Source: Magallana gigas (lineage: Eukaryota). Taken from it: DNA of 64,000 nucleotides. Position numbers and translations under genes: made by a program. Positions 27,021 through 41,100 of this stretch are shown here, one piece after another. Under the pieces are notes generated by a model. That model was not told where the DNA came from and did no database searches. It saw only the letters and a program-made list of their open reading frames with translations. Within the stretch, counting starts at the first letter, position 1, and each line of letters opens with the position of its first letter. The stretch covers positions 15,438,001 through 15,502,000 of the forward strand of contig NC_088855.1 of the NCBI RefSeq assembly GCF_963853765.1. Reading direction: 5' to 3'.

Positions 27021-28841
27021 AATTGGTCTTCGTCCGTCGTCGTGCGTTGTGCGTCGTGCGTCTGTGCGTCGTGCGTTAACAATTTTACATTTTTGACTTC
27101 TTCTTGAAAACTACCAGGCCAATCGTTATCGTTTTTGGTGTAAAGCATCTCTATGGTAAGAAGAATCTAAATTGTGAAATTCATGGCTCTACCACCCCTG
27201 AGGTGCCACGGGCGGGGCCAAATATGCAAAAAAAGCCAAATTTTCAAAAATCTTCTTCTCTACTCCCACGCATGTGAGGAAAAAACTAAATGCATGGTTA
27301 TGTTGTCCATGAAGCCCTCTACCAAAATTGTGAAATTTATGGCCCCTGGGTCCGGGGTTCTGGCTCTAGGGTGGGGCCAATGTGGCCATATAGTAAAAAT
27401 GTATTTAATCTTAGAAAATCTTCTTCTCTACTACCATATACATTTGTCAAAAACTAAATGCATGATTATGATGTCCATGAAGCCCTCAACCTAAATTGTG
27501 AAATTCATGACCCCTGGGTCAGGGGTTCAGGCTCTAGGGTTGGGCCAATATGGCCATATAGTAAAAATGTATTAAATCTTAGAAAATCTTCTTCTCTATT
27601 ATCATATATATTTGTCAACAACTAAATGCATGATAATGATGTCCATGAAGCCCTCAACCTAAATTGTGAAGTTCATGACCCCTTGGTCAGGGGTTCAGGC
27701 TCTAGGGTTGGGCCAATATGGCCAAATAGTAAAAATGTATTAAATCTTAGAAAATCTTCTTCTCTACCCCCATATATATTTGTTAAAAACTAAATGCATG
27801 ATTATGATGTCCATGAAGCCCTCTACCAAAATTGTGAAATTCATGACCCCTGGGTCAGGGCTTCAGGCTCTAGGGTGAGGCCAATATGGCCAAATAGTAA
27901 AAATGTATTTAATCTTAGAAAATCTTCTTCTCTACTACCATATACCGTATATTTGTTAAAAATTAAATGCATTGTTATGATGTCCATGAGGTCCTCTACC
28001 AAAATTGTGAAATTCATGACCCCTGGGTCAGGGGTTCAGGCTCTAGGGTGGGGCCAATATGGCCATATAGTAAGAAAAATTAAAATCTTAAAAAATCTTC
28101 TTCTCTACTCCCACACATGTGAGCAAAAAACTGAATACATGGTTATGATGTCCATGAGGGCCTCTACTAAAATTGTGAAATTCATGACCCCTTTGTTAGG
28201 TGTTCAGGCTCTAGGGTTGGGCCAATATGGCCATGTAGTAAAAATGTTTTAAATCTTAAAAAATCTTCTCTACTCCCACACATGTGGGCAAAAAAATGAA
28301 TACATGGTTATGATATCCACAATCTCCTTGACCTAAATTGTGAAATTCATGGCCCCTGAGTCAGGGGTTCAAAACATGAAAGGGGGGGGGGCGCAATATG
28401 GCAATATAGTGTTAATGCATATAATGTTTAAACATTTTCTTCTCTATTCTCACACATCTGTATAAAAAAACTGACTAATAATTATGTTTACCAGGAAGTC
28501 CTCTACTGAAATTTTAATTTTCATGTCCCCTCAAGGATGGGTTTTGACTCTAGGGCAGGGCCAAAATGGATGTATAGATGTTAATGCATATAACGTTAAA
28601 AAATTATTTTCTTTACTCCCACACACCTGAAAGGAAAACTGAATTCATGATTTTGTTGACCAGATCTTTTAGTTTTTCACCAAAATAATAGGTTTCACAG
28701 TTCTTTTTGAAACGTGGTCGTCATTACAAATTTATAATTTTTCTACTCCAGTATGAAACCTAATTAATTAGACTCCATGACAAGTTTGTGTATGGGATAT
28801 ATGCTACTCAGGTGACCGTTAAGGCCAATTGGCCTCTTGTT
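26984..28841 (+). mobile_element. Non-autonomous Helentron/HINE (Helitron-like) carrying ~9 copies of a ~168-bp satellite monomer (Cg170/HindIII-like)
   Basis: 5' T-run followed by hairpin AGGTCACCTGAG-TCA-CTCAGGTGACCT (26989-27015) and a (CGTCGTG)-type microsatellite. Internal tandem monomers start at about 27169, 27325, 27493, 27661, 27829, 28002, 28170, 28335 and 28509. 3' subTIR CTCAGGTGACC (28807-28817), palindrome AGGCCAATTGGCCT and CTTGTT end. This matches the described architecture of oyster satellite-bearing Helentrons; the satellite name is from recall. Confidence 0.88.
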
Positions 28842-30534: not shown

Positions 30535-32104
30535 TGCACCATACATAATACCATAATCCTATTGAGAGGGAGGACAATCTCATATACATGTATTTAGTAT
30601 GATATATGTATAATGTACTACCAGTATTTTAATCAATTAAGCAGTGGGATTAGAGGGGAATAATAAATACATTCTATATAGGACACCATATTTTAGAATA
30701 TCATTTTGCTGACTCATTTTGAAACACTATACACTGTACAAAATTTGAAGAACAATTAATGCTTGGGTTTGAAGGGAAACAACTTATGGAGAGAGGAATT
30801 TGAACTTGATGGTTAAGTTTTGATATTGAACAAAACAAACACATATAGTACTTCATAAAATCCACAATTTACATAGATTTGTTACATCAAGATTACTATT
30901 ATTTTTTTAATGGTTAAAAAATTCTGATGCATTTACATGGGTCTTACTTCCTGAAATGTATTGTGTAGGCATTGTGGCTTCTAAAGTTTGAGTCTGTAGA
31001 GTCTATGCTATAGAGTCTTTGTCCCTGGCCTTTTTATCCCTTTTACATGTAGCTGTGTTGTCTGTTGTGTATTCTGTGGGCAGTAAACGCCCTCGGGAGG
31101 TCAACCAAAACAATAAAGAATTTATATAGTGGAGGTTTTATATGTTACTTAAATTATGATATCAGTTGTTATCAGTTTCTATTAATAAATTTATTGATCC
31201 CTGTTTTACTTTTCTTTTAATACCACAAAAATGTTGTGCGACATGTTTGATTAGAAACATGATTTGGCTGAGTGCTGAAATGTGTTACGTACTCTTGAAT
31301 ATAATGTATCGTAGAGGGACGGTTGTACAATTTTAATAGCAGTAAAACTGAACTGTATATATATAATCATGTAGCGTTACATGTATACTGCTGAATGTTG
31401 TTAGAGAAGACAGGCAGTCATATATGGCATGAAAGATCGTAGTAATGGAATAATTCGTGTTAATTCACAAAATTTGCAGTAAACTCGCCCAATTTTATGC
31501 ATGGTATAATAAAAATCGTTTTGGGGTAAACCTTGAGAAAAACTTCATAACTTTAGTTTGTCTGATAAACATGATCAAAGTCTAGATATGTAAAGATTGT
31601 ATATTTAATGAAAAACCTTATTGATATACATGTACATGTAAATACTATCATGACCAGTCGTTACGTTAATGTTTCTAATGTTTACGCGTAAATGAACCGA
31701 TATTGTGACATAAATTACGTTTGACGATGTGGTCTTAATCTGCACCCCCCCCCCTTCCAAATATTTTGATAAAGAAGCGTGATATACAGATTGTGAGATA
31801 TATTTTACTGGTTTAGGATAAGACTGGAAGATACGGCCGCTAGGAGTATTGATTTTCACACCTATCCGATGACACCGTAATTGTCTGCCTGGCAGGCTCC
31901 GTAATTACGATTAATGATCAAGAGCCAATTATCAGCCGATAACGGACCAGAAAAAACTCCTAATTAGCGGTAATTAACGCAGTCAGTCCGCCTATACAAA
32001 CACTGATGAACAGACAGACATCTGGTCATTGCATGTCTGTCTGTCGTCCTCATCTGTGAGTATCGAGAGTGACTCCAAGCCCGACGCGTCAGCTGATTAA
32101 CGAG

Positions 32105-32112
32105 TATATAAA
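32105..32112 (+). promoter_or_regulatory. TATA box of the orphan gene
   Basis: TATATAAA 78 bp upstream of the ATG, preceded by a GC-richer, motif-dense upstream region. Confidence 0.65.
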
Positions 32113-32182
32113 GTAGTCTATAAAATCAGGTACATAGATATCGTTCCTATCAATTCTCAGTCGACTTTTGAATAGTATAGCC

Positions 32183-32527
32183 ATGTCTGCCATGTATAAG
32201 TTTGATATGTACGCTGATCTGTATGAGGCGGAGAGCCGACTACAGAATGCTCATCGTCAAGTGTATGCTCTGAACGCGAGGCTCGCGGACCTCGAAGCTC
32301 GCTACGGTAAGGCTCTTCAAAGTGGAAACAGAGTGTATAGGTACAGACTCAGGATGAAGATCATCACCATAGAGGGGCTAATGAACGCCTACTACGAGTA
32401 CACGCTGCTGAAGAAAGAGGAAATAAAGGACCTTCGCTTCAAGCTGTTTGGTGAAGAGGACGAGTTGGAAGACGAGGATGAGGAAGACGAGGAGGGAGAG
32501 GAGGAGGAAACTGAAGTGGAAGAATGA
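32183..32527 (+). CDS. Intronless uncharacterised 114-aa protein (N-terminal coiled coil, basic-aromatic core, acidic tail)
   Basis: GCC-ATG start (a second in-frame GCC-ATG at 32192), GC-rich coding-like composition against AT-rich flanks, TATA box upstream, AATAAA at 32924-32929 followed by a GT/T-rich downstream element. Protein: MSAMYKFDMYADLYEAESRLQNAHRQVYALNARLADLEARYGKALQSGNRVYRYRLRMKIITIEGLMNAYYEYTLLKKEEIKDLRFKLFGEEDELEDEDEEDEEGEEEETEVEE. Confidence 0.8.
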   Translation: MSAMYKFDMYADLYEAESRLQNAHRQVYALNARLADLEARYGKALQSGNRVYRYRLRMKIITIEGLMNAYYEYTLLKKEEIKDLRFKLFGEEDELEDEDEEDEEGEEEETEVEE

Positions 32528-32715
32528 GTTCCTTGTTGGAAGAATGAGGTTCATTTATGAAGACTGAGATCCAACTCTTATGAAGAATGAGATCATCGTA
32601 GAAAGAATGGGATCCTTGTAGGAAGAATGAGGTCCATGTAGGAAGAACTAGGTTCACGTACGGAAGAAGAATGAAGTCCAAGTCCTCGTGTGAAGAATAA
32701 GGTCCAAGTCGAAAG
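32518..32715 (+). repeat. Degenerate ~20-bp tandem repeat (GAAGAATGAGGTCCTTGTAG), ~9 copies
   Basis: Starts at the last codons and stop of the orphan ORF and continues into its 3' UTR. Confidence 0.75.
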
Positions 32716-34164
32716 AGGTATGCTGCAACCCATCGAGAGAGCATCCCTTGTCCCACGTTGTCTTGTTGATGTGTATGATCACTTACAGCTGCCTGTGCCC
32801 TGAAAATAGGCACCGTCAGAGCCTGGACAAGCCGTCGGGACGTAAGGACTCTATTCCACCAACAGTGACAAACTGAAAGAAACAAAGTAACGAATTTTTG
32901 TTGAATTCCATTGTGTTACTATCAATAAACGAGAAGAACGTATATATTTCAGTTTTTTGGTTGTTGTTGTTGGTTGTTTTTTTTTTTTTGAAGCCACGTT
33001 TTAGAAGATGGACCCACTGTTTATAAATTAGATTATTTACAGATGGATTATATTAAATGTAGAGATATTAAGAAAAACTATATATCTAATTTATCTTATA
33101 TCCCTTAAGAAAGGATAATGGACATATACCGTAGTATCCATGCATACTTGTTCTTGAACATGTTCTGAAATAATTTCGAAACAATTCCATAGTATTATAC
33201 TCATAACACCTTCCTTCAATCAAATGCTTCACATTGGTACAGTTTTTGAGGATGACCTGACCAGGCTCAAGGACCATGATGCTGTCTCAGGCTAAATAGT
33301 CATAATTTATACACCTTTATTTTTTTTTAAATCATTAAATGCCACCATATTAAGTTTCTAAAGAATCGTTTTCTTACATTGACCTGCATACACAATTCAA
33401 ACATGCACCGATCTGTAAATCAATTAATATTTGGTGAATTGCCGAAATTTTAAAGATTGGACTGAAAGATTCAAAAAATTTCCTCTCTATCGTGTGCAGT
33501 TCTGCACAATTTATTTTTAAGTATAGTCGTGTTTTGACAAGTGACAATGCAAGACCGTTACGGAGAAATACATGCACCTTTACGATCTGCACTGTGACCG
33601 CTGGCGGTTCCCAATTTGCTTTTTGCTACGATAAAAGTAATGATGCATTTAGCAGAATGATTTTTTTGAATTGTCAAACCTATAAGTATAGCAAATGTTC
33701 ATTATGAATATTATATTAGGTCTAAGTGCAGTTTCTTAATTGGCATGCGTGCATCCAATAAAATTCCGGTGATGGGGGTCCGAGGGAATATTTTGCTTGC
33801 GATAAATGAAAAAAAAAATGGAATGAAAACCCCTTCTTAGATCCATTAATCCGTTGTTGTTTTTGTAATTTGAAATACTTAATCATAATTGCGAACAATA
33901 TAGATTCATCGAGGATATTTTGAGAAGCATAAATCGGGTTAAAAATATTTACCCTGCGCGGGTCTAAGTGGGGTCGATAACCCCCCCTCCGCCTCCATTG
34001 AAAAATTAAAATAAATTCACATAGTAAAAATTCTCGAAAATAGGCCACGGCCTCTCAATGGAAAACAAGATTATCTCTCGGACACCCCCTGAAAAACATG
34101 TTCGTCTAAAGGCCCGAAAAGTTCGGCTGTTGTCAAAAGTTTTTAGGACAACTTATCTAGGCCC

Positions 34165-34264
34165 GGTACTTCCTGTTAACGCATGCGCATGAGATTTTAA
34201 GCGCAATATTTTGAAAGCGATGTTGATGTTTTGATAATTTTCTGGTTTTTGTACTGAAAGACAG
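34165..34264 (+). promoter_or_regulatory. NCAPD2 promoter and non-coding first exon
   Basis: ETS-like ACTTCCTG (34168-34175), NRF1-like ACGCATGCGCAT (34179-34190), CHR-like TTTGAA (34210-34215), donor CAG|GTAACC at 34264/34265. The next exon (acceptor 35130) carries the ATG. Confidence 0.6.
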
Positions 34265-34889
34265 GTAACCAATTAAATTTATTTAATTTCATCAAATGAT
34301 TTATATAGGCAAAAGTTTAAAACAACATGTTGAATGAATTTAACCCCTGTTTTACTCGTCCATTGTGGACCACTAAGTGTTCATCAATTCACATTTGTTG
34401 ATAGCCTAATGAAATGAAAGAAGGAATACATATAAACTCTAAAGTTGGTTTTAGTTACCTAAAAGTGACTTTTTCACTACTGTTTGATTCCGATCTTTGC
34501 ATGTTACAGTTAATAAACACGACAACAGCCAACCAAGTGTGACGGACTATTATTGTCTTGTGTCTTTTTATTATACAAAACAAGATGTTTTATAGCAGAG
34601 CCCTCGTTAGCCTTTTACTTTGTATGGGACTGCATTTATGTTTTACTTATAATAATTTTTCTCTGCACCAATCTTCGGAGACAGGGATAATCATGAAAAT
34701 ATATATCAAAAGCGTTGTGACAGTCTGAGGCAACTGATCACCAGAAAGAAGTTTGAAAACACCTGACTAGAGATTCACGGGGGCTGGGTTCCAGCCCTCT
34801 CTTTCAGGTCATTATTTCTTCCATTCTGTTACATTTGGTGCCAAGAGCGGAATTTCTTACAGGGTAAAGATTCAGGAATGTTGATCACT

Positions 34890-35139: not shown

Positions 35140-38100
35140 ATGAGTTTTGAGTTTATCATTCCATCACAAAAAGATGACCTTCTGAACAAAACAGAAATCA
35201 ATCAGTATGTGGTGGATGAGGTGTTGTCGTTCCGAGAGATTCCCAGTGCTTTGCAGTGTAAGTTGATTATGTTTTAATTGTAAAGATGCCATACATTGTA
35301 ATGTATACTGCCTGTTTAAAAAAAAAAATTCGCTTACACTACTAAGATACATACAAAATTAACACTTTTTTTAGATTTTTTATTAAATGGTGACTAAGAT
35401 TGAAAGTTTTAAAATGAGCATTCTTATGTACAGTTTTTTACTATGTAAAAAATGATGATGATTGCATGGAGTTTTTTAAGTAAATTCTTTTTCTTGCAGC
35501 TGTGAAGAGCAGTTTTCGCAGTAATGGGACTCAATGTTTACTTGAAAAGTTTGATGTGTTTTTCAGTATAATTATGTAAGTCATGATCTGACATTTTTAC
35601 ATTAATACCATTTTGATAAGTCTTAGAAAACGTTAAGACCCTTGCATCATACCTAAGAGTTGGAGCCATTGCAACATTTTAGTAAAAATTAGGAAATTTG
35701 AATTAGAAATAGGTCTATTTGACAATCCCAATTAAAGAAAATTTATATGATCCTTGCTGTTTGTTTAGAATATTTATAAAGTAGAGAACATCTTAACAAA
35801 ATTAATAAATTGATAAATTTGTCAACTGTTGATACATGTACTTAATTAAATATGCATCAGATAGGGACTTATCAATGAACAATTTGAATCGTAATATGCT
35901 ATGTGTTGTTGCAGTTTGAAGAAAGATGTGAAACCAGATTTAAAAGAAGATGCCTGGCAGTTAATTTTAAAAGGTAAAATACTGCCAACAACATTTTCTG
36001 ATTGAGTGGAGGTGTTAATTACCATACATTCTTGTTTACATTATTCACTTTATCTACAAAAATTCAAATGGAAAAAAAGATCAACATGCACATCATGTAC
36101 ACTTTATAAAAATCATGTATATGCAGACCAATTTGTATGGTTATTATTATTATACATGTGACTTAACAGCATGTGTAGATTTATACACAAAATCTGACAG
36201 TTGGTAAAAATATTCTTTATGAATAAAAATTTTGATAGTACTGTCAATCATATTCAACAAACAAAATATTGAACCACAATATTGTCAGGTTTTATATTTG
36301 CATCAAATTTTGTAGTTGGCAAGTCATTGGCCACAGAGGTAGCAGGTGTGTTGGAGGACACATCCCTGGAACCAGGGTCTCGCCTGGCGCACCTGAACCA
36401 GGTGAAAATGTTGTGTTACCTGCTCTGTCAGTACATGGAAATGTTTGAAGACGACAGCAATGAAAAATCAGATGTCATCACAACAGGAAAGGTAAACAAT
36501 GATCTGTTTTATATGTTAATTGTGTGTACACTGAAATATATTCCCTGAGAGATACATTAATTTATTTATTTGTCAATAGCATTGAAAAAGTGTACATTTA
36601 TGAAGAAATAGAGTAATTTGTCTATTGATTGTATTCAGGGTCGAAAGAACAAGAAATCAACTGACATGGCTATTGACTGGGAGGTGGAGAGAGAAAACGG
36701 AGTCAAGACACTGCTTCACTTGGTCTCGCTGAATATTTTGAGGCTCTGGGATCCACCAATCGCAGAAGTAGAATTTGTCAAGTAAGTCTTTAAACCACAA
36801 AATATTCAGAAACAATGTAGAATATTGTACAAGATAATGTAGTAGACTGAATCCAAAGTTTTCTAGAGATGTTTCAGTTGTAATAATTATGTCCTTGTAT
36901 ATTTGTTTTACAGCATGATAACAAACTTGGTGTACAAACTACTGGAGAATCCACACATTGTGTATGTGAAGGCTAAGGAGACAAGGACTGCAATATTTAA
37001 CATTGTAGGAGTTATGGTGAAGCGTTACAACCATGCACTCAGTAAGTGGAGTTGATGCACAAAGTACAGTCAAACTTTGTTATCCTGAACTAGATAATAC
37101 TGTTTAATAACTTCAAGATATTTGCGATATCGAAGTAAAATACTATAAAAATAAGTGGTTGGGACTTACAATCACTTCGACATATCCATTGTATTCGAGA
37201 TATTGAAGTTCAAATGTAGTTTATATTCATGTATAGATATTATTTCAGATCAGTCATGTTCCTTCTTGATTTTATTGAATATAATGTGGAAGCCACTAGT
37301 TTAGATATTTGTTTTTTTTACTAATGAGGCTCCTAATGCAAAAACAGTTAAGAAAACTATATTACAGAACCTTCTCAGAACCAATTTCGGGGAAGAGTTT
37401 TATTTACATGTACATGTACGGAATATGAGAAAAGTTAGAAAATGGTTTTTGAATCTTTTTTGTGTAAATTTGAGATTTGCCGCTGACAGTACTGACACTC
37501 GCTATGGAATATGAATATTTGATGTACACATATAAATTTGAATACTAGTACCAGATTATCATGCCATTGATGCTAAAGAGTGCTTTAAAATGATGTAATA
37601 AAGCTGCTCATCATATTACCACCATTAGGCACCATACATTTCCTTACTGGAATTGATTTGTGTACCTGACAGGTGCCAGTCTGAAGATTCTACAGCAGCT
37701 CCAGCACTTTGAGCACCTGGTGTCCCCCCTGGCAGAAATGACCAGCATCATCACCACAGAGTACGGCAACAAGAGCGTAGTGGCAGAGATCATGAGGGAG
37801 GTGGGCAGGAAGGATCCAAAGGACCTGGTCCGAGACAACACTGGAACAAAGTCATTTGCCACCTTTCTTGTGGAGTTGTCCGAGAAAGTTCCTGGAGTGA
37901 TGATGTCCAACATTAGTGTGGTCCTCTGTCACTTAGAGGGAGAGGTAAGCAAGGGTGTTGTGTATTCATATTGGGTGATGAGATTCTTAACTGTCATATG
38001 ATTGTATTTTTACTTTCCACTAGATGATCCCAGCACTGATTGATAAAATTTAAACAGATTTAATAATAATGTGATGACTTGACAATCTGAATTGTCATGC

Positions 38101-41100
38101 AGAGTTTACAGTCTGATGATAAAGCATACAGGTGCATTGACTTTAGACATGCAGATTTGCTTTTACACCACTAATCTAACTTTCTGTTGCATGATGCCAG
38201 CTTTGATAAAACTTGAGTGTATAAATAATGTTATTTTTTGCTGCAGTCCTACACAATGAGGAATGGTGTCCTGGGGGTGATGGGAGAAATCTTACTGAAG
38301 GTCCTGAGTAAGGACAGCTTGGAGGACAAACTGAAGGACACACGAGATCAGTTCCTGGAGAAACTAGAGGTCAGATTAACAGCTGACCAGAGCTGTAACT
38401 CTAGATCTGTTCTGTTCATACTGTATATTGTATCTGTGGACAATATTAAAATTTTAACAAAAAATTGTGCATGTTAATGTCTGGTGAAAAAAGTGGTCTG
38501 TTTATTCACATTCATCATTCTGCCAGTTGCTCAAAATTAATTTCAAATTGTGTTCATTTTATACATACATGCATATAACATGCATATAGGACAGGCAAAT
38601 GTATATAGTAAGTATTTGTTAATTTATGTGTAAATTTGTCTTTTGCGTTTTAGGAACATATCCATGATGTCAACGCTTTTGTGAGAAGTCGAGTTCTTCA
38701 GATTTGGTTGAATTTAGTTAATGAAAAGGTATGTTGATAAATTTGATGTGTACTGATATCAGAAGCACTACGTCCTGTCTGTCTCTACCTTTGTCAGAAC
38801 TTTAATACTTTGTTATAATTCTGAACTGTTTAAGTTAATTTCTTCAAATTCTGGGTCATTTGTGTTTAACAATCACATCTTAAGTCAACATATAATGGGT
38901 TAATAGCCATAAAGTATATTTTGTACTCTTGATATCTGCTATATACATGTCCATTCCACATATATGTTTCTACTTTCCTTTTTACAGTGCCTCCCCCTGC
39001 CAAGACATGAGCACCTGCTGAGTCTGTGTATCGGTCGACTACAGGACAAGTCGTCCCAAGTCAGGAAGCAGGCCATTCAACTCGTCACTGCATTCATCAA
39101 GTCCAATCCATTCGCAGCAAAGGTACTGACTCAGTTTCTTTAGAAATATTGCTCTTGATCTTAATGCTGATGTAAATATATGTACCTGGTAAATATAGTG
39201 TATCCTTACATATTTAGAAGAGAGTTGTATAAATTGAGCAACCCTCTTGTGGTTTAGAAGATTTTTATGGTGTAGAGAATCATGAATCTAGTGTTTATTA
39301 TTGTCTTAATTCTAATCTTGCATGTTTTCCCACAGCTGTCACTTGAGGACCTAAAGGCAAATTATGAAAAGGAGAAAGAGAAGTTGGAGAGCATGGCTCC
39401 AGAGGAACAATCAGTTTTGGAAGGTTAATGATTTTACTAACTACATTCAATGTCTAAATTGATGATGGTCAAAACAATCTGTTAAATAATAGATGACTAT
39501 ACTTTGTGCTTGAATTTTTTTTTTACTAGATCCTTCAGATTTTTATTTGTGATTATTTCTTGCTAGATTCCACATTAGTGAAGATTGAAGAGGAGTGGAA
39601 ACCTCTGGAGAAAAAACTGAGGAAAGCTCTCAAAAAGCTGGAAGGAGAAGAGGAGATGGAAGAGGACAGCAATGAAGAGCTGATTCAGGATGAGGAGTCT
39701 GCTAACAGGTAAGGAAAGTGTCAAAATGACATCAATCAAGAACCAATCCAAGATGTCTGCTAATAGGTAGGGAATGTCTCAAAAGTGCATAAAACAAGGA
39801 GCTAATTCAAGATAAGGAGTCTGTTTATACAAAGGGAATTTGTTAAAATTATACAAAACAAGCTTAGGAATGGATTTTTCAGGAGCAGGAGATTGCCAAT
39901 GTGTTGAAATGTTTCGAATTGGCAACAAAAGTGAGAAGTTTTCCAATAAATGGGGAACATGTTGAAATCATGCAAACTGCACAAGACAATGGATAGAAAA
40001 ATTAAAATTGACGATTAACTGTACATTTTGAAAATAATTACAACTACATGTAGTTATATTTCATGATTACATTTGCTGATTTATATTCTAGTGTCATGGA
40101 CAGGATTTACAACCTTTTGACTGAGGAGAAATTTTCCGATGCCAAACTGTTACTGGCTGCCTTCAAGGATGCCTTCCCAGACAACTCTTTTCTACAGGAC
40201 ATATCAAAAGAAAGTCAGAGGTAAGTTATTAACACATTATCACACTGCCAGCAGTTGGTGAAGCTAATTTTGTTCTGTTTGTTTGCCATTCCATACAATG
40301 CGTCTTTAAAATTTTTTTTTTTTTTTTAAATAAAACAAATTTAGATAAAGAACATGGTTATACAATGTAAGATTAGAAAAAAACTTAAGATTTTAAGTAA
40401 AACTACATCACAATTAACTTGTTTTTTTATAGTTCTACATGTATTTGTATAGAAGAGAGAAATACATGTGTATGACAACCTTATACACAAGAAAAGCTTT
40501 TTTGCACATATATATGTAATGTGGATGAACTGAGATTGATTTCCATTTGTTTACTATGCATTATTCATAGAAGTTGAATTCTTTTGTTTATTTTCAGTGA
40601 GGCTGACACTGAAGATTCTCAGAGATCCACTGATGCCAACATTGACTTGGGTCACATGAAAATGATTTTCTTTGGTAATAGAAAAATATGACATATCTCT
40701 ATATACAGGACATTTACCAAGATTATCCATTTGTTAAGCCATTGTATCATTAAAATATACATATGTAAATCAGCATCTTTTACCTTTATGTTTACCTATA
40801 TGTAGGTCACAAAAAACAAAGTCTGGTGATAACCTCTGGCATTGAAGAGGAGAAAGAGAAGGACCCCATAGTGAATGAGGTTACCAAACAACAAGTCCTT
40901 GTTCAGTACCTTAAGGTAGCTACTCTCCTCAACCTTTCTAATTTGTAGAGCTAAAAAATTGCTTGTACATGTAGTAATTATTGAATCCCTTCCCTCTCCC
41001 TACAAATATGGACGCAGTTAACAAAAATTTACACTGGTTGGTGTGGAATTAATTGTTGTGGTGATCCACACAATGAAGTGTTCATCAAAGTAAGAAAAGC

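Follow-up and report, generated by a model that had tools for sequence, protein, structure and literature searches.

Introduction

The histone chaperones nucleoplasmin/NPM and NAP1/SET are small proteins of an abundant type, in which a long aspartate/glutamate (D/E) tract follows a folded domain of oligomerisation type. The folded part is a beta-sandwich pentamer in nucleoplasmin/NPM and, in NAP1/SET, the NAP domain, with a long dimerisation helix and an alpha/beta earmuff. HMGB1-type proteins likewise place an uninterrupted D/E tail, which could fold back, after a basic, aromatic-rich folded part. Histone variants such as H3.3 and H2A.Z, as against H3 and H2A, come from genes with poly(A) signals. 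Replication-dependent histone genes are intronless and carry a 3′ stem-loop and a histone downstream element (HDE); in reviews, their mRNAs are the only ones credited with this kind of 3′ end (PMC10730174). In mussels, histone genes are linked to 5S ribosomal DNA (rDNA; PMC6204057). Here we compare with these systems a 114-codon gene at 32100–32990 on the plus strand of a 64,000-nucleotide (nt) stretch of the oyster Magallana gigas (RefSeq assembly GCF_963853765.1, contig NC_088855.1, positions 15,438,001 to 15,502,000), the whole of which we call the window. We favour, on a balance of evidence that we judge about even, the reading that this gene is a polyadenylated, hyper-acidic hairpin member of a mollusc protein family tied to histone supply.

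The family resembles replication-dependent histone genes in having intronless members with stem-loop and HDE, mussel histone genes in having one member tandem-amplified in a 5S array, and the variant histones in having members with poly(A) signals, the window gene included. It differs from histones in that it has neither a histone fold nor a Pfam Histone match and in that the window gene lacks the stem-loop; compared with histone mRNAs, stem-loop processing of the paralogue mRNAs is predicted from sequence. Likeness to the histone chaperones lies in the D/E tract and also in the wiring of family paralogues to the histone expression pathway. An earlier reading of the window from its letters alone (the sequence-only reading) had called the tail nucleoplasmin-like. 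That holds for composition, 20 of the final 24 residues being D/E as it had counted, but not for the fold: the model is an all-alpha hairpin with no earmuff, and neither a Nucleoplasmin nor a NAP domain was matched in Pfam. No bipartite nuclear localisation signal is evident in the window protein, by comparison with acidic-tract chaperones. It also has no HMG box; the analogy with HMGB1, a basic, aromatic-rich fold ahead of an uninterrupted D/E tail, is architectural only.

A large mollusc family of small intronless genes

The sequence-only reading had taken the gene for an orphan. This was wrong: a six-frame search of the 564-Mb genome returned 75 matches, and at least 25 diverged intronless paralogues are present. 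Paralogue matches reached E values of 7e-17 to 1e-10 at more than 20 loci, and the diverged single-exon paralogues, on chromosomes 2, 3, 4, 5, 6, 8 and 9, are 27–45% identical to the window protein. The product of one of them is identical to UniProt K1PRP6 (Magallana gigas), which together with K1PXN9 and K1Q6W4 provides the type accessions of the family. A profile built from 12 members, the window protein among them, recovered 1194 representative proteins at E ≤ 1e-3 and 699 at E ≤ 1e-10. Every member with a named source is a “hypothetical” or “uncharacterized” protein of a mollusc, with sources that run from bivalves through gastropods to Octopus (Crassostrea, Ostrea, Pinctada, Mytilus, Mizuhopecten, Sinanodonta, Mactra, Dreissena, Elysia, Lymnaea, Biomphalaria, Arion, Batillaria, Nucella, Octopus). 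The sequence-only reading had likened the protein's motif to that of a family of small uncharacterised lophotrochozoan proteins; the motif does mark a real family of small uncharacterised proteins, of which all named members are molluscs, and a wider lophotrochozoan range is conjectural. The window protein fits the family form, a single-exon open reading frame (ORF) of about 90–150 amino acids (aa) with a predicted two-helix hairpin.

Pfam has no model for the family, in keeping with the earlier statement that no named domain could be recognised. A scan of the window protein gave no match even at E ≤ 10, and none was found in the 12 family members, the founder proteins or the longer homologues, bar one SWIM finger. 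That finger lies in a 401-aa Ostrea gene model and is probably a product of model fusion. The literature searched yielded no paper on accessions of family members.

In a phylogenetic tree the window gene joins an orthologue of 77% protein identity, and this pair then joins two chromosome 9 paralogues (support 94/88). The most conserved subfamily, represented in M. gigas on chromosome 2 (37,058,289–37,059,519; LOC105349009 / K1Q6W4), is 75–89% identical across bivalves, gastropods and Octopus. It is found on more than 700 Logan contigs; its tail is basic and S/T-rich, and it lacks the stem-loop. From its sequence conservation it looks like the ancient founder.

Coding status of the window gene

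A 148-aa antisense ORF overlaps the 114-aa ORF, so ORF length alone is not above chance and the case for a gene rests on other evidence. The ratio of nonsynonymous to synonymous divergence (dN/dS) was 0.06–0.12 against an orthologue at 93% protein identity, about 0.16 against the orthologue at 77% identity, where dS is saturated, and 0.13–0.38 between recent paralogue pairs. The sequence-only reading had staked its claim in part on there being homologues with dN/dS below 1, and both the orthologues and the paralogue pairs are of this kind. A contig that was not chosen by protein sequence (run X3, see below) has three differences from the window in the coding sequence, 3/3 of them synonymous. 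A DNA contig that is 98.85% identical over 31747–33920 (L039) differs in the coding sequence at four synonymous sites and by a single amino-acid replacement in the final residue, E114A; it was found via a near-exact protein match and is thus not an unbiased sample. Contigs L071–L080 were retrieved by exact protein identity and so were unusable for the corresponding polymorphism ratio (pN/pS). Judged from these sequence comparisons, the gene and its family are under purifying selection, and we consider it very probable that this is a real coding gene of the mollusc family.

A presumed transcript is represented by the 710-nt contig of run X3, a small, transcriptome-sized assembly (15.8 M letters, 47,897 contigs). 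With reads mapped to 30800–34800, this contig begins at 32141, 22–36 nt downstream of the two TATA boxes, and stays colinear with the genome, without a joint, as far as 32818. On the same strand, the gene upstream ends in a poly(A) tail at 31203 and no RNA covers 31336–31737; the window ORF is therefore not read-through from that gene. The claim of a complete intronless unit was upheld by the ORF, by its signals and by the unspliced course of the contig through the ORF. The locus is thus a gene in its own right, intronless, driven by a TATA box and equipped with a poly(A) signal. In being a compact intronless unit with a TATA box, the window gene is like replication-dependent histone-type genes.

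The 2.2-kb window locus is single-copy as DNA in the genome. No transposable-element or viral domain of Pfam was found in the protein, and there was no relative in IMG/VR (with the array paralogue described below as query) or by phage tblastn; a match to a known transposon or viral ORF, which the sequence-only reading had named as fatal to its proposal, was accordingly not found.

One Logan protein (P0003) was considered as a read-through isoform and rejected. Its differences are mostly C-to-T, with the in-frame TGA read as W, which fits a contig of bisulfite-converted DNA translated with another genetic code.

Histone-type 3′ ends and a 5S rDNA array

About 49 of the family matches lie on chromosome 5 between 44,125,000 and 44,206,000, at a period of 1667 bp that proved to be that of a 5S rDNA array. 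Each unit carries on one strand a 5S rRNA gene (Rfam, 117 bits), an intact 116-aa paralogue of the K1PXN9 type and, 27 nt past the paralogue stop, a histone stem-loop (Rfam Histone3, 35.4 bits where the gathering score is 34). Chromosome 4 bears another 5S array, at 10.18 Mb, with a 1086-bp unit that the literature already describes (PMC6204057). Only the 5S gene is common to the two arrays. We found no report of an ORF in an oyster 5S spacer in the literature searched.

Stem-loops are not confined to the array. One follows the ORF in all copies of the clusters on chromosome 8 (35–38.5 bits by Rfam Histone3), at a locus at 37.4 Mb on chromosome 5 (L022; 33 bits) and in a homologue from Pinctada imbricata (P0196; 39.1 bits). 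For the chromosome 5 array copy, all chromosome 8 copies and the Pinctada homologue, the stem-loop is at or above the Rfam gathering threshold and lies 27–40 nt past the stop. The combination of stem-loop and HDE was recorded for paralogues L003, L022, L025–27, L029, L031, L036 and L038 and for a Pinctada locus (L045). The oyster HDE, CGAAAAGA, lies about 12 nt past the stem, and its Pinctada counterpart is CAGAAAAGA; both the spacing and the sequence of CGAAAAGA match those downstream of the genome's own H2A and H2B genes. No histone genes were present in the 10 kb on one side of two chromosome 8 paralogues (L040, L041) and of the locus at 37.4 Mb on chromosome 5 (L042). Where several paralogues have the stem-loop, the window gene has a poly(A) signal.

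A genome-wide stem-loop scan, in which 75 candidates were scored, turned up at least two other non-histone ORF families with these elements. A dispersed, multi-copy family of proline-rich proteins of about 450 aa with a C-terminal RING-like cysteine motif occupies loci on chromosomes 1, 4 and 9 (L050–L053, L058, L059), and a 133-aa helical ORF with stem-loop and HDE lies at 29.03 Mb on chromosome 1 (L057). In both, a canonical stem-loop 27–30 nt past the stop is followed by CGAAAAGA, and neither has a Pfam match. The literature searched held no report of non-histone stem-loop genes in molluscs. As a side observation, an H2A gene on chromosome 8 (10,799,371–10,801,216; L068), with canonical stem-loop and HDE, encodes a product that ends in SQEY and is H2A.X-like.

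A predicted helical hairpin with a conserved tip and a variable acidic tail

The window protein (114 aa, 13 kDa) has a net charge of about −15, with 16 K/R versus 31 D/E. AlphaFold2, run on the 12-sequence alignment, predicted one antiparallel alpha-helical hairpin with a mean predicted local distance difference test score (pLDDT) of 85, rising to 94–97 in the core. Conservation was taken over 12 and over 275 family members. Near-invariant residues are Q26, L30, R40, Y41 and A44 on helix 1 and R53, Y54, L56, R57, G65, Y70 and Y73 on helix 2. Those of the two helices stand opposite each other, level near the hairpin tip, and make up a compact basic-aromatic patch that, in the model, is most likely the specific binding surface. 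The near-invariant residues are 80–99% conserved among the 275 aligned members and all are present in the window protein, which departs from the consensus at F20L, C24H, F52Y and A74T. The family signature, also near the tip, reads RY..A on helix 1 and, on helix 2, FRY.LR...EG...Y..YA. The acidic tail is retained in both orthologues, even where dS is saturated, with differences in length, and its length is polymorphic in populations, giving protein variants of 105–117 aa.

A sequence-profile search of the PDB gave coiled-coil noise only (best E 0.026, a dynein coiled coil). Foldseek against the PDB, AlphaFold DB clusters and the ESM Atlas gave only generic hairpins and uncharacterised mollusc proteins, the top structural matches in AlphaFold DB and the ESM Atlas being family members; an ESM Atlas feature search scored below 0.8. 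The generic hairpins include the N-terminal domain of ING4/ING5, Rop, ESCRT-III and the arm of seryl-tRNA synthetase, which likewise have two antiparallel helices of about 40 residues. Their template-modelling scores (TM-scores, query-normalised) were 0.6–0.7, with Foldseek E above 0.1, identities of 10–20% and no shared motifs; for the ING N-terminal, Rop and ESCRT-III hairpins E was at least 0.27, a likeness expected of any long hairpin. Complex prediction with the histone folds of the genome's own H2A and H2B scored 0.00, which speaks neither for nor against binding.

Possible roles of the family

Under the reading that we favour, the family protein would be required in time with histone synthesis, either during S phase or during rapid cleavage cycles, and the window gene would be its polyadenylated, replication-uncoupled and most acidic variant, much as H3.3 is to H3. 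The specific binding surface would be the basic-aromatic hairpin tip, with nucleic acid or an acidic protein patch as its probable partner, and the acidic tail would either bind basic partners such as histones or mask the protein's own basic tip. The histone-type 3′ ends of several paralogues lend indirect support to the earlier suggestion of a chromatin factor. Even so, a putative link of this protein to histones or chromatin is a tentative proposal that we hold at less than an even chance, and a histone chaperone in the strict sense is unlikely. Rather unlikely, too, is the wider proposal that a non-histone mollusc family is wired into the replication-dependent histone mRNA pathway as a stoichiometric partner of bulk histone synthesis, with the window gene as its replication-independent, hyper-acidic variant; the family might then serve in chromatin, in histone storage or in S phase. 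Under that proposal, and with the RING-like and 133-aa ORFs that have these 3′ elements too, oysters would provide the first demonstration in animals of histone-type 3′ ends on several non-histone gene families.

Several results weigh against the favoured reading. The window gene itself has no Rfam RF00032 match at E ≤ 1 over 30683–34024, and a pattern search found no perfect 6-bp stem-loop. In three poly(A) or single-cell RNA runs (X21, X22, X24), of which about 1% was sampled, no reads fell on the window gene, which is therefore not broadly or highly expressed; that run X3 is RNA is a guess from the size of its assembly. The acidic tail is not family-wide: in the best-conserved subfamily its place is taken by a basic, S/T-rich tail, so it does not represent the family's ancestral functional core. 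The stem-loop and HDE also occur in two or more unrelated families of non-histone ORFs, so the stem-loop may mark an expression programme and not a chromatin function. The founder's lack of the acidic tail and the 3′ elements on unrelated families both weaken the chromatin link. The fold, as modelled, is a generic hairpin and gives no pointer to function.

An alternative is a coiled-coil protein of generic kind, serving as an adaptor or for oligomerisation in the cytoplasm or cytoskeleton and without a chromatin role. The 3′ ends on paralogues would then set S-phase or cleavage-stage timing only, and the tail would serve solubility or regulation. The fold searches, with their ING N-terminal, ESCRT-III, Rop and seryl-tRNA synthetase hairpins and with ciliary microtubule inner proteins also among the structural look-alikes, point that way, as do the elements on the RING-like and 133-aa ORFs and the founder subfamily's lack of an acidic tail. 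We nonetheless regard such an adaptor as somewhat unlikely: conservation falls on Arg and Tyr of surface type at the hairpin tip, not on heptad core positions alone, and histone-type 3′ ends are otherwise called unique to replication-dependent histone mRNAs (PMC10730174).

The same tip residues (invariant R40, Y41, R53, Y54 and R57) could instead contact RNA in the manner of the Rop or seryl-tRNA synthetase hairpins. On this account the protein would be a binder of RNA or ribonucleoprotein, acting for example in the storage of 5S rRNA or ribosomes or in the metabolism of histone mRNA, with the tail as an autoinhibitory mimic. It draws on the paralogue's constant orientation in every unit of the 1667-bp 5S rDNA array and on the presence of Rop and seryl-tRNA synthetase arms among the look-alikes. 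The linkage to 5S rDNA may, however, be a means of amplification only, as mussel histone genes are 5S-linked too (PMC6204057); no RNA-binding domain was matched, and the structural likeness is not significant (E > 0.1). We consider an RNA-binding role improbable.

A stress- or infection-inducible small protein of a lineage-expanded bivalve family, with an intronless TATA design for fast induction, is decidedly improbable. The architecture, the strong expansion of the family in the lineage and the lack of expression in the three sampled RNA runs, which suggests conditional expression, are consistent with it. But the protein lacks a signal peptide and any immune domain, the founder's 75–89% identity across mollusc classes is atypical of immune effectors, and histone-type ends point to cell-cycle control.

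That the locus holds no functional protein gene at all (but an accidental ORF, a pseudogene, the relic of a transposon or virus, or a piece of a neighbouring gene) is very improbable and largely refuted by the selection data: ORFs of similar length do arise by chance nearby and no listed sequencing run that holds the stretch is recorded as RNA, but dN/dS is far below 1, the signature residues are kept in hundreds of homologues, the locus is single-copy as DNA without viral or phage relatives, and the upstream gene ends at 31203.

Layout of the locus

The elements that the sequence-only reading had described here, TATATAAA, the GCC-ATG context, the 114-aa ORF, AATAAA and a T/GT-rich run, were all found in place (Table 1). 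The TGA stop of the 114-codon frame is at 32525–32527.

Table 1. Features of the window gene and its surroundings, in window coordinates
Feature	Positions	Strand	Basis or remark
Conserved upstream (promoter-proximal) block	31856–32050	+	Alignment with two orthologous contigs
TATA box 1, TATATAAA	32105–32112	+	In the window and close species only (orthologue alignment)
TATA box 2, TATAAAA	32119–32125	+	Common to all three orthologous sequences, the distant one included
Probable 5′ untranslated region	32141–32182	+	5′ end of presumed transcript contig at 32141
GCC-ATG start context	32180–32185	+	Sequence
Coding sequence, 114 aa and TGA stop, uninterrupted	32183–32527	+	ORF list, purifying selection
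Helix 1, residues 3–47	32189–32323	+	pLDDT >90
Helix 2, residues 50–89, antiparallel on helix 1	32330–32449	+	AlphaFold2
Disordered acidic tail, residues 90–114	32450–32524	+	pLDDT ~50
20-nt tandem repeat, ~7 copies, consensus GGAAGAATGAGRTCCWTGTA	32518–32668	+	Sequence
3′ untranslated region	32528–32945	+	Contig cover to 32818; rest inferred
Predicted poly(A) signal, AATAAA	32924–32929	+	Sequence; site of cleavage inferred only
T/GT-rich downstream element	32950–32990	+	Sequence

The 20-nt tandem repeat sets in at the gene's last codons and stop and fills the proximal 3′ untranslated region; each unit thereby repeats the C-terminal EE-stop sequence as GAAGAATGAG. Upstream, the conserved block contains long invariant runs even against the species at 77% protein identity. 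Five TAATTR sites, of homeodomain type, lie at 31878–31976 (−305 to −207 from the ATG), and two adjacent TAATTA sites sit in the block that is conserved in the orthologues. This cluster is the densest of the window, with about 0.2 sites expected per 99 nt.

Between the window gene and the upstream gene region lies a satellite-like 168-bp tandem repeat (27281–28371; 6.5 copies, 87% match) with a higher-order period of 336 bp. The downstream neighbour on the same strand (36282–39143, +) resembles condensin complex subunit 1; one exon fragment matched Cnd1_N (E = 1.2e-4) and another HEAT (E = 1.4e-4), both under the Pfam curated cut-offs. The nearness of the window gene to this condensin-like chromatin gene may be coincidence.

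Implications

Taken alone, the window gene is one well-supported member of a large conserved mollusc family that is unnamed and lacks both a Pfam model and any characterised relative. The surprise lies in the family context: histone 3′ stem-loops and HDEs after non-histone ORFs, and one gene riding in a 5S rDNA array. Because the founder keeps 75–89% identity from Octopus to oysters, it does something important, and functional work on the family would best start from its subfamily (LOC105349009 / K1Q6W4).

If the 3′ ends are processed as predicted, poly(A)-selected oyster transcriptomes, with the annotations derived from them, would have missed these genes systematically. The family would then be a candidate for a new chromatin or S-phase factor, and oysters would offer a natural system in which to learn what else cells couple to histone supply.

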